Assembly: GCA_002269645.1 (NCBI GenBank) | Contig: NIVC01001021.1 | Location: forward strand, 310,001 to 374,000 | Source: Macrostomum lignano | Taxonomy: Eukaryota | DNA length: 64,000 nt | Direction: 5' to 3' | In this document: positions 21,834 through 23,820 of the stretch, one piece after another | How positions within the stretch are numbered: the stretch's first letter is position 1 | How the letters are laid out: each line of letters begins with the position of its first letter | Made by a program: the position numbers and the translations under genes | The notes under the pieces: model-generated | Databases searched by the model: none | Seen by the model: the letters and a program-made list of their open reading frames with translations, nothing else | What the model was told of the DNA's origin: nothing

Positions 21834-22007
21834 ATGGGATCCACCTGGCAGTTTGTCAAATTCACAGCAGTATTCTTGGCCTCGGCGGCTGTAGGCTCGG
21901 AGCTCGTGCACCGCTTCTTCAAGCCCCTGTCTGACCTGCCAGTCGAGTTAGAAGAAGCCAGACGTCAGAGGCGTCTGCAGCAGCAGCAGCAAAATGAGAT
22001 TAAATGA
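21834..22007 (+). CDS. UQCC6: BRAWNIN/UQCC6 (C12orf73, sloth2)-like mitochondrial microprotein, 57 aa; below the ORF-track cutoff
   Basis: Translates to [57 protein letters not shown]. One hydrophobic helix followed by [11 protein letters not shown], matching the family motif GAEVVHRYYRPDL. Confidence 0.8.
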
Positions 22008-23820
22008 ATTCTCCTACTGCGTTAGCCAGTCTCTCGTGCTGGTGCCGTATGAAGCTTATCACGTGACCCGCTACCACCAGTGGATGCTGCAGCCTGATAT
22101 ATTGGAGGCCACGGCGTCAGAGCCTCTTAGCCTAGAGGTGAGCTGTTCAGTTTTCATTATCCGGTATTTGTAACTGCGTTATTGCCGACTGCTAGAGATC
22201 GAGATGAAGATTATTCGCCCTCTATGACTGTACCCGCCTATTATCAGGAAAGATTCTCCACAATGATTTACCCTCCTTACCCTCTATGACCGTACCCGCC
22301 TATTATCAGGAAAGATTCTCCACAATGATTTACCCTCATTACCCTCTATGACCGTACCCGCCTATTATCAGGAAAGATTCTCCACAATGATTTACCCTCA
22401 TTACCCTCTATGACCGTACCCGCCTATTATCAGGAAAGATTCTCCACAATGAATTACCCTCATTACCCTCTATGACCATACCCGCCTATTATCAGGAAAG
22501 ATTCTCCACAATGGTTTACCCTCAATACCCTCTATGACCGTACCCGCCTATTATCACGAAGATTCTCCACAATGATTTACCCTCTTTACCCTCTATTACT
22601 GTACCCGATCCTTGACAGGAAGAGTTCGAAATGCAGCGTAGTTGGCGCAATTCAGACGACAAGTTGACCTTTATTGTGCTGCACAGAGACACTCTGGAAT
22701 CCGCTATGGGGTCTAAAGTGCCGGTAAGTGGATCCTTTGCGCTTACTTGTGGGGACCAGCTATGGTCAGGGTGTGGGGACCAGCTATGGTCAGGGGTGTG
22801 GGGACCAGCTATGGTCAGGGGTGTGGGGACCAGCTATGGTCAGGGGTGTGGGGACCAGCTATGGTCAGGGGTGTGGGGACCAGCTATGGTCAGGGGTGTG
22901 GGGACCAGCTATGGTCAGGGGTGTGGGGACCAGCTATGGTCAGGGGTGTGGGGACCAGCTATGGTCAGGGGTGTGGGGACCAGCTATGGTCAGGGGTGTG
23001 GGGACCAGCTATGGTCAGGGGTGTGGGGACCAGCTATGGTCAGGGATGTGGGGACCAGCTATGGTCAGGGGTGTGGGGACCAGCTATGGTCAGGGATGTG
23101 GGGACCAGCTATGGTCAGGGGTGTGGGGACCAGCTATGGTCAGGGGTGTGGGGACCAGCTATGGTCAGGGGGGTGGGGACTCCTTAGCTGCAGTAAGTGC
23201 AGAAGCATGCAAAGTTAAGCAGAATTGGCCGCGGTTAGTCATACTATAGCCAACAATCTTCTATGTAGTTTTTAATTCGTATACTGGCAATCGGTACTCG
23301 TGAACAGCCGCGTCTTTCATACCGGTTTATTCGCCAGGCGTCCAACAAAGAGTCAGCTTTGTTGCCATGGCAACGCCAGCCGGCAGCGGAGTTGGCGGCA
23401 ATGATTGGCGACGTGAATTCTTTTTCAATTCCCAACATCGATGAGGACAACCAAGACAACGAGGAGGTTGTTAGCGAAGGTCGCGAGTTCGAACTCGAAG
23501 TGATGATAGCCGAACCGGCATACAGAGGCAGGGGCCTGGGCCGCGAGGCTGTCCAGTGCTTGATTGCCTACCTGTCCGAGGCGCTGGGTGCTCAGCCTGG
23601 CCAGCTGCTGGCAAAGATTGGCGACGATAATCTGGCAAGTCAGCGGCTGTTCACCGGCCCCGGACTGCGGTTCCAGCTGGCCGACAGGCAGCCTGTGTTC
23701 CGGCAGGCCACCTACCGCTGTCCGAGGGAGGCTGCGCCCTCGACACCCCCGGGCTGGGCTGGCGTGCTCACCTGCTCGCCGCTGCCCGCTGCTGCCGCCG
23801 CCTGTGGACTCAGTGCTTAG
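21994..23820 (+). CDS. NAT9: N-acetyltransferase 9-like GNAT protein, 3 exons, ~243 aa
   Basis: Exons 21994-22137 ([32 protein letters not shown], donor gtgagc), 22619-22723 ([18 protein letters not shown], donor gtaagt) and 23338-23820 ([41 protein letters not shown]). All junctions phase 0; motifs match NAT9. Confidence 0.92.
22218..22618 (+). repeat. 62-bp tandem repeat in NAT9 intron 1 that reiterates the 3' splice-site region
   Basis: Unit GAAAGATTCTCCACAATGATTTACCCTCATTACCCTCTATGACCGTACCCGCCTATTATCAG; ~6.5 copies ending at the real acceptor. Confidence 0.95.
22746..23178. repeat. 25-bp minisatellite GTGGGGACCAGCTATGGTCAGGGGT in NAT9 intron 2
   Basis: About 17 near-perfect copies. Confidence 0.95.

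Follow-up and report, generated by a model that had tools for sequence, protein, structure and literature searches.

In the flatworm Macrostomum lignano, an unannotated open reading frame (ORF) of 57 codons, assigned on sequence grounds to the BRAWNIN/UQCC6 family, overlaps by 14 nucleotides (nt) the start of the gene for the N-acetyltransferase NAT9, and we consider it probable (roughly 0.6) that the two proteins are made from one mature mRNA by leaky scanning. BRAWNIN/UQCC6 is required for the assembly of respiratory complex III, and NAT9 is known as a tubulin acetyltransferase. The DNA analysed, hereafter the window, is a 64-kb stretch comprising bases 310001-374000 of contig NIVC01001021.1; positions are counted from its first base unless another sequence is named, and the NAT9 locus corresponds to bases 331994-333820 of the contig. 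The evidence that carries this reading is threefold: the membership of the small ORF in the BRAWNIN family, the recurrence of the BRAWNIN-NAT9 order in two contigs of other origin, and an upstream ORF that in all three cases is devoid of ATG between the two starts and is entered through a weak start codon followed by a strong one.

A BRAWNIN/UQCC6 reading frame at the start of NAT9

The small ORF occupies positions 21834..22007 of the + strand, from an ATG at 21834 to a TGA at 22005-22007. Its product of 57 amino acids (aa) matched the Pfam family PF14990 (DUF4516; C12orf73/BRAWNIN/UQCC6) with 28.0 bits and an E-value of 1.7e-6, a narrow margin over the gathering score of 27, and the variant peptide encoded by one of the paralogous loci of the same assembly (L002) scored 27.1 bits. 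A hidden Markov model (HMM) built from four BRAWNINs of organisms other than Macrostomum gave the small ORF 43 bits (E 7.6e-12), and this was its sole match among 5,387 six-frame fragments from the window and the paralogous loci. The 57-aa peptide was also compared by phmmer with 1.84 billion representative proteins, which returned three matches below E = 0.001. Two of these are credible (P0127 and P0128, with E-values of 2.9e-4 and 4.8e-4) and are themselves strong members of PF14990, at 62 and 83 bits, while the third is a 3,095-aa protein for which no aligned stretch was listed. When the window peptide was included in a profile, 413 proteins were retrieved, and those bearing a name are BRAWNIN/UQCC6.

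The peptide also has the form of the family, namely a length of about 50-100 aa and an N-terminal hydrophobic helix followed by the motif G-[SA]-[EQ]-x-V-H-x-[YF]-[YF]-x-P. A single hydrophobic helix spans about residues 7-26 (the most hydrophobic 17-mer, residues 10-26, has a mean Kyte-Doolittle value of 1.39), and the family core behind it is kept, with residues of the motif, the proline among them, invariant in our alignment (A2). The usual MPAG start of the family is replaced by MGST. A tryptophan at position 5 aligns with the conserved tryptophan of the family, which favours the genomic ATG at 21834 as the true start. Towards the other end, the peptide has a poly-Q tail encoded by a run of CAG triplets, which reads SSSS in the NAT9 frame, 5' of the NAT9 ATG. 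In our copy of the PDB we looked for a structure of any PF14990 member and found none. Taken by its sequence, the small ORF thus belongs to the BRAWNIN/UQCC6 family, as the original prediction had proposed for the 57 codons at 21834-22007; that prediction had named a failed family search as grounds for giving the idea up, and the Pfam match above the gathering score, the independent HMM and the phmmer matches to family members instead bear it out. By homology, the peptide would be located in the inner mitochondrial membrane and would take part in complex III assembly.

The locus occurs three times in the assembly, namely in the window, in L001 (NIVC01002233) and in L002 (NIVC01000415), and each time the ORF is intact and the overlap with NAT9 is kept. 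The copies differ in the small ORF by V13I, one synonymous change (GCC/GCA) and one in-frame CAG insertion. In the three-copy comparison the small ORF thus shows 2 substitutions over 160 nt, whereas 10 columns are substituted over 95 nt of the leader just upstream (Fisher P = 0.0012) and 12 over 148 nt of the 3' part of NAT9 intron 2 (P = 0.005); NAT9 exon 3 carries 16 in 474 nt, and the sequence of NAT9 exon 1 does not differ among the copies. The low count relative to its flanks indicates that the small ORF evolves like coding sequence. The CAG run itself varies in length between copies, comprising four or five units (window 21980-21993; L002 9985-10000).

A small ORF ahead of a larger one could also be a regulatory upstream ORF that damps NAT9, or the decaying relic of a BRAWNIN gene, its peptide being functionless in either case. 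Pfam scores barely above the threshold (28.0 and 27.1 against 27), the missing N-terminal MPAG and a second BRAWNIN gene that may possibly exist elsewhere in the genome would all agree with this. The family core is nevertheless preserved, all three copies have an intact ORF in which the only changes are conservative, synonymous or in frame, and the two contigs described below carry the same arrangement with well-scoring BRAWNINs, so that we hold a functionless peptide to be quite improbable. The small ORF is very probably a real, expressed BRAWNIN gene, and its omission from the annotation is likely to result from an ORF-length threshold.

The downstream gene was modelled with three coding exons on the + strand: exon 1 at 21994..22137 (48 codons, phase 0, donor GTGAGC), exon 2 at 22619..22723 (35 codons) and exon 3 at 23338..23820 (160 codons plus TAG), the last encoding the core of the GNAT acetyltransferase domain. 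Intron 1 (22138..22618, + strand) consists mostly of 6.3 tandem copies of a 62-nt unit (22218-22607), and intron 2 (22724..23337, + strand) mostly of 17.4 tandem copies of a 25-nt unit (22748-23180). The 243-aa product is identical to GenBank entry PAA73280.1 (BOX15_Mlig019531g2) and matches PF13302 (GNAT) with 48 bits. Its N-terminus, MRLN..., is that of NAT9 in other animals, it contains the NAT9-type pattern MR[LVT]N...LVPY...RYH.WM, and its named relatives are called NAT9 or tubulin N-acetyltransferase 9. The identification of this gene as NAT9, made at first from the letters of the DNA, is in keeping with the deposited model, the domain score and the names of the relatives.

The two reading frames meet in CAAAATGAGATTAAATGA (21990-22007), which contains the NAT9 ATG at 21994, in frame +1 relative to BRAWNIN. 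The 14 nt shared by both, ATGAGATTAAATGA (21994..22007, + strand), read M-R-L-N-E in NAT9 and (N)-E-I-K-stop in BRAWNIN, and the NAT9 codons used there include the locally rare AGA and TTA (TTA accounts for 3 of 103 Leu codons). No ATG occurs in any frame in 21601-21833, nor between the starts at 21834 and 21994. The first ATG stands in the context ccgcATGg, with C at position -3, and the NAT9 ATG in the context caaaATGa, with A at -3. The overlap, the absence of intervening ATGs and the two start contexts therefore agree in every particular with what had originally been read from the sequence.

The BRAWNIN-NAT9 pair and its proposed translation from one mRNA

The same pair of genes was encountered on the contigs of two NAT9 homologues that rank among the closest matches to M. 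lignano NAT9. In L008 (Logan contig ERR14224704_987406, 1,254 nt), a BRAWNIN ORF with its ATG at 253 and its stop at 444 is separated by a 22-nt spacer from a NAT9 ATG at 467; in L009 (Logan contig DRR639838_57262, 1,326 nt), a BRAWNIN ORF at 314-484 is followed after a 12-nt spacer by a NAT9 ATG at 497. The small ORFs match PF14990 with 44.9 and 39.9 bits, respectively, and in both contigs the NAT9 ORF is uninterrupted, encodes 206 aa and lies on the same strand as BRAWNIN. The two NAT9 proteins share 76% identity with each other, 44% and 42% with that of the flatworm and about 50-55% with those of mollusc, fly and frog alike, while the two BRAWNINs are 30-34% identical to that of the flatworm, to which they are no closer than insect BRAWNINs are. 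Run ERR14224704 comes from PacBio HiFi sequencing of the metagenome of a coral sampled by Tara Pacific (PMC13083261), so that L008 is genomic DNA of an animal in the coral holobiont, possibly the host.

Measured from start to start, 160 nt in the window, 214 nt in L008 and 183 nt in L009 contain no ATG in any frame, with mononucleotide-shuffle probabilities of 0.12, 0.03 and 0.10. For the window, where the gap proper is 157 nt, this is mildly unusual by itself (P about 0.12 by shuffling; a fraction of 0.18 of the windows of local coding sequence (CDS) is equally free of ATG) and becomes meaningful only alongside the comparison with the family and across species. There the difference is clear-cut: the three NAT9-linked BRAWNINs have no internal methionine, against 1-7 in 120 of 120 other members of the family, and BRAWNIN CDSs that are linked to SMIM4, the usual partner of the gene, contain 3-8 internal ATGs. 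Position -3 is occupied by C, C and T at the BRAWNIN ATGs and by A, A and G at the NAT9 ATGs of the window, L008 and L009, in that order, the classification resting on the general rule and not on the consensus of each species.

The junction is the variable part. The ORFs overlap by 14 nt in the window (-14) and stand apart in L008 (+22) and L009 (+12), with frame offsets of 1, 1 and 0, which indicates that the pairing is conserved and the overlap incidental. The original prediction had suggested looking for a conserved overlap in related genomes; the pairing recurs in both contigs, with spacers of 22 and 12 nt in place of the overlap. In L009, the spacer cacggcggcgtg contains no AG besides that of the stop codon, so no splice acceptor is available there.

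Further features of the two contigs were recorded. At 482-499 of L009, BRAWNIN and NAT9 stand in one frame, with TAG and four sense codons between them; stop-codon readthrough would there give a fusion protein, which the frame offset of +1 makes impossible in M. lignano and L008. Both contigs have a CAG acceptor with a pyrimidine tract 4-12 nt before the BRAWNIN ATG, and in both NAT9 is free of introns and is followed 2 nt past its stop by AATAAA. About 110 nt further downstream in L008, another strong acceptor precedes an ATG (MALRLFKSS...), an arrangement suggestive of an operon.

We infer from these comparisons that in M. lignano both ORFs are carried by one mature mRNA and that both are translated. 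Such an mRNA, capped or bearing a spliced leader (SL), would contain the 57-codon BRAWNIN ORF followed by the NAT9 ORF. Scanning ribosomes would reach the BRAWNIN AUG in its poor context, with C at -3, where some would initiate and produce the complex III assembly microprotein; the remainder would cross 157 nt without an AUG in any frame and would initiate at the NAT9 AUG, with A at -3. The ratio of BRAWNIN to NAT9 protein would then be set by the context of the first start. An upstream ORF free of ATG and of internal methionine, with a weak start followed by a strong one, is the design that leaky scanning requires, and it is present in all three cases. Reinitiation is inefficient in eukaryotes after a long upstream ORF and where backward movement is needed; it is unlikely in M. 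lignano, where the upstream ORF is long (57 codons) and reaches its stop only 11 nt past the NAT9 AUG. Of the two mechanisms by which a single transcript had originally been thought to give both proteins, leaky scanning is thus favoured by the pairing in L008 and L009, the ATG-free body and the order of start contexts, whereas reinitiation is disfavoured by a NAT9 ATG that precedes the BRAWNIN stop.

The deposited gene models bear on the extent of the transcripts. In each of the three copies, the adenylate kinase (ADK) gene downstream has a GenBank CDS that is 5'-partial and starts exactly at a tttcag acceptor, which suggests, as an inference on pipeline behaviour, that GenBank CDSs here extend to the 5' end of the transcript unless a stop intervenes. 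The three GenBank NAT9 CDSs begin at the ATG and are not 5'-partial, and there is an in-frame stop upstream at 21949; on the same assumption, the underlying transcript models would include that stop. UniProt holds models from an older assembly, of which P0001 and P0124 start right after the stop at 21949 and P0125 starts at 21852. NAT9, C12orf73 and the three Mlig gene identifiers were also sought in the supplementary data of the genome and transcriptome papers on M. lignano, where none of them has an entry.

Several observations weigh against a single mRNA decoded by leaky scanning. Given a peptide free of methionine, synonymous recoding showed the absence of out-of-frame ATGs to be expected (P = 0.82), so that whatever constraint exists sits in the amino-acid sequence; we therefore dropped the out-of-frame absence as independent evidence and kept the methionine-free peptide and the cross-species comparison. 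L008 and L009, with NAT9 proteins 76% identical, are not two fully independent observations. The pairing was not seen around NAT9 of a scallop, where no BRAWNIN lies within 10 kb on either side, nor in Paragonimus, where RPS25 is found 97 nt upstream of NAT9 instead, and among 80 metagenomic NAT9 loci, 57 of them with more than 250 nt of upstream sequence, none had BRAWNIN upstream. Neither the 57-aa peptide nor its 58-aa form was present in a collection of 15 billion proteins, by exact look-up or word-indexed homology search, which shows only that the ORF is unannotated; GenBank and UniProt carry no annotation of it for M. lignano. Logan likewise yielded no transcript contig. The CDS of the upstream neighbour, a zf-C4 nuclear receptor, starts right after a stop codon and fits the above reading of CDS boundaries imperfectly. 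The name of the NAT9 gene, g2 of transcriptional unit Mlig019531, implies that annotators cut that unit somewhere. Finally, M. lignano adds a 35-nt SL ending in ATG to the transcripts of 30-39% of its genes and keeps about 15% of its genes in operons, with the SL acceptor motif [T/C]TNCAG (PMC8629364, PMC5730564), and a perfect match to this motif, CTGCAG (21975..21980, + strand), lies 14 nt before the NAT9 ATG and inside the BRAWNIN ORF; three further CAGs come after it, and every copy has preserved it.

Splice acceptors, deposited gene models and neighbouring genes

The last of these points leads to the main alternative, an operon-style processing in which BRAWNIN and NAT9 would be co-transcribed and the NAT9 mRNA released by SL trans-splicing at CTGCAG/CAG (21980/21981) or at the next CAGs, so as to start 13 nt before its ATG. 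BRAWNIN would then come from molecules that escape trans-splicing and are perhaps polyadenylated after ATTAAA (21999). Because the acceptor is internal to the BRAWNIN ORF, a given precursor could give rise to one mRNA or the other but not to both, an arrangement reminiscent of the SL1-type operons of C. elegans. In M. lignano, the cistrons of operons are typically about 100 nt apart after subtraction of repeats, each having its own acceptor (Ustyantsev and Berezikov 2021, PMC8629364; Wudarski et al. 2017, PMC5730564). The present locus resembles those SL-resolved operons in that the zf-C4 receptor, NAT9 and ADK lie on one strand, with acceptors just before their ATGs and repeat-rich DNA between them, and differs from them in the overlap of BRAWNIN with NAT9 and in having, as its sole candidate acceptor for NAT9, one that falls within the upstream ORF.

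Besides the commonness of trans-splicing and operons in this animal and the conserved match to the acceptor motif, the g2 in the gene name and the acceptors that both neighbours have a few nt before their ATGs speak for such processing. So does ATTAAA (21999..22004, + strand), the only AATAAA or ATTAAA hexamer in the 2.6 kb of 21800-24400, which arises where NAT9 uses the rare codons AGA-TTA and might serve as the poly(A) signal of a short mRNA containing BRAWNIN alone. We give it less weight because a canonical hexamer, sought within 1 kb of the stop, was found at none of the three genes of the window. The CTGCAG, moreover, lacks the upstream pyrimidine tract that marks the acceptors of ADK (aaatttcag) and zf-C4 (catctttgcag). 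The annotated NAT9 CDSs start at the ATG and not as 5'-partial ORFs reading SSSK..., and the older models reach upstream of the site. The original prediction had named NAT9 mRNAs that start or are trans-spliced downstream of 21834, for instance at the CAG run, as grounds for giving the idea up, and the annotated CDS starts speak against this indirectly. If an SL were added there, its terminal ATG would stand in the BRAWNIN frame and open a 9-codon ORF across the NAT9 start. Operon-style processing would also leave unexplained why the upstream ORF is free of methionine and ATG, and why the arrangement recurs in L009, which has no acceptor. We therefore regard it as unlikely.

Less likely still are separate overlapping transcripts, namely a short BRAWNIN mRNA ending in NAT9 exon 1 or intron 1, for which the ATTAAA at 21999 could again be invoked, and a NAT9 mRNA with its own start or an SL acceptor such as that at 21851/21852, within the small ORF. 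The UniProt model P0125 does begin at 21852, directly after CAG (ggCAG/TTTGTC). A transcript starting there would, however, retain 51 BRAWNIN codons with the ATG of the SL in their frame, and would still be dicistronic. The alignment of W5 with the conserved tryptophan of the family favours the genomic ATG, and the ATG-free design and the cross-species pairing would again be left unexplained.

P0125 (A0A1I8GFE2; window 21852-23820) is also the source of another possibility. Here BRAWNIN residues 7-38 are fused to the NAT9 frame by the skipping of a 22-nt segment (21947..21968, + strand, donor GTTAGA), and NAT9 would thereby gain an N-terminal membrane anchor. Beyond the deposited model itself, it counts in favour of such a fusion that the segment starts with GT and ends with AG. 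Yet 22 nt is far below the normal size of an intron, the donor departs from the M. lignano consensus GT[G/A]AG, the segment is not skipped in the other five deposited models, and L008 and L009, with other frame relations, have no counterpart to it. On its size and poor donor we rejected the segment as a real splice; it is probably an artefact of the gene model, and a fusion protein is very improbable. The model nevertheless means that BRAWNIN sequence of M. lignano is already present in public databases, as the N-terminal extension of an 'N-acetyltransferase domain-containing protein'.

The DNA between the zf-C4 receptor, NAT9 and ADK consists largely of tandem repeats. An array of 46 copies of a 34-nt unit (19669-21224) lies between the receptor and BRAWNIN, and one of 25 copies of a 40-nt unit (23847-24836) starts 27 nt past the NAT9 stop; the arrays in and around NAT9 are a source of long spurious ORFs on both strands. 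A pyrimidine-rich microsatellite of the (TATC)n type (21605..21737, no strand assigned), present in all three genomic copies, directly precedes the candidate 5' leader of the BRAWNIN-NAT9 unit (21738..21833, + strand), which is free of ATG; its first letters, ttcataagCAG, follow a pyrimidine tract and may be an acceptor for cis- or SL-splicing.

Both neighbours are encoded on the same strand as NAT9. The upstream gene, encoding the zf-C4 nuclear receptor (16803-18884), carries the acceptor ctttgcag 27 nt ahead of its ATG (16785-16830), and in all three copies its GenBank CDS begins right after an in-frame TAA (16803), not at the ATG (16824). Downstream, ADK (31216-31932) has an annotated CDS that is a 5'-partial ORF starting exactly at ...gcAATAAAtttcag/CCAGACATG (window 31195-31221; L001 20600-20620; L002 19170-19190). 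This acceptor is a perfect match to the SL acceptor motif, lies 6 nt before the ATG and has AATAAA directly in front of it, which suggests that ADK is SL trans-spliced; it may be in an operon with the upstream genes. An arrangement of similar appearance surrounds the NAT9 gene of Paragonimus skrjabini miyazakii (L004, JTDE01002552.1), where RPS25 and, 97 nt after it, NAT9 lie on one strand (316-842) in what looks like an operon. A BRAWNIN-like fragment 4.7 kb beyond that NAT9 gene and on the other strand, DGQTVHLFWHPVSD (L004 36612-36695), had E-values of 0.002-0.01 and no Pfam support and was dismissed as a chance match.

Partners of BRAWNIN and significance of the pairing

A shared mRNA is not new for BRAWNIN. 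In Drosophila its homologue sloth2 is the downstream cistron of the sloth1(SMIM4)-sloth2 mRNA, for which reporter assays showed leaky scanning (Bosch et al. 2022, PMC9681215), a precedent that the original prediction had stated correctly. Linkage of SMIM4 and BRAWNIN has been reported from choanoflagellate to lamprey, the genes being unlinked in jawed vertebrates (PMC9681215). In keeping with this, all three BRAWNIN loci that we fetched (L005, from a bombyliid fly genome run; L006; and L007, the ENA metagenome scaffold CHAS20-1_SAMN14350113_METAG-scaffold_257) carry SMIM4 (PF15114) immediately before BRAWNIN, either as an ORF or as the second exon of one. In L007, a eukaryotic contig in a metagenome, this is an unannotated SMIM4 second exon (...VDKTFKKREVEK...; 7888-8201) that ends about 20 nt before the BRAWNIN ATG. 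No SMIM4/UPF0640 (PF15114)-like ORF was found in six-frame translations of the 64-kb window, the flanks of L001-L003, L008 or L009, using an HMM of three sequences, which a very divergent SMIM4 could escape. The suggestion that BRAWNIN has a different partner here thus holds for the window and the paralogous loci.

The M. lignano locus resembles sloth1-sloth2 in placing a BRAWNIN homologue in a unit of two ORFs a few nt apart, with a poor start context upstream and a good one downstream, and the downstream start of the Drosophila mRNA, CAAAATG, is the very heptamer found at the NAT9 start. It differs in that BRAWNIN is the first cistron and not the downstream one, that its partner is a 243-aa GNAT acetyltransferase and not a paralogous microprotein, that the ORFs overlap by 14 nt, and that there is no SMIM4-like ORF in the window. 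The peptide shares with vertebrate BRAWNIN/UQCC6 (C12orf73) the Pfam family, a similar size, the single helix and the VH-x-[YF][YF]-x-P core. The vertebrate gene stands alone and its product contains 1-7 internal methionines, whereas the flatworm peptide has none; we know of no linkage of vertebrate BRAWNIN to NAT9. MIEF1-MP and ASDURF are conserved microproteins encoded in the 5' leaders of mammalian mRNAs for larger proteins, and some such pairs interact physically; the order proposed for M. lignano, a small ORF followed by a larger protein on one mRNA, is similar. A dicistron of BRAWNIN with SMIM4 was thus known before, and what would be new is BRAWNIN as the first cistron with NAT9, in the absence of SMIM4.

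In our searchable library we found no paper that treats BRAWNIN (UQCC6/C12orf73) and NAT9 together, in line with the earlier statement that no report of the pairing was known. We likewise know of no functional link between the two proteins, and the proposal that the arrangement couples a complex III assembly factor to an acetyltransferase found no support beyond the conserved linkage itself. We put forward only tentatively, and with considerable doubt, that BRAWNIN-NAT9 is an ancient, selectively maintained dicistronic gene common to the flatworm and a slowly evolving animal lineage. The even similarity of L008 NAT9 to its mollusc, fly and frog counterparts would fit a cnidarian host, in which case the pair would predate Bilateria and would have been lost many times. 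There would then be either a real functional tie between NAT9 and complex III biogenesis or a general need of BRAWNIN for a shared mRNA, the latter being suggested by its other known arrangement, with SMIM4, which is also dicistronic.

For M. lignano, a regeneration model with working transgenesis, the small ORF supplies a conserved mitochondrial gene that is missing from both public annotations. Genes of this kind are hidden systematically by ORF callers with a minimum of 100 aa and by rules that allow one CDS per mRNA. For the BRAWNIN family, the pairing with NAT9 would represent a second, independent dicistronic setting, with another partner and the opposite order of cistrons, whose design has persisted in at least two lineages despite a varying junction. 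The locus thus offers a test case for how eukaryotic two-protein mRNAs are maintained, even where SL trans-splicing could separate the cistrons, and for whether NAT9 may have an unrecognised mitochondrial link.

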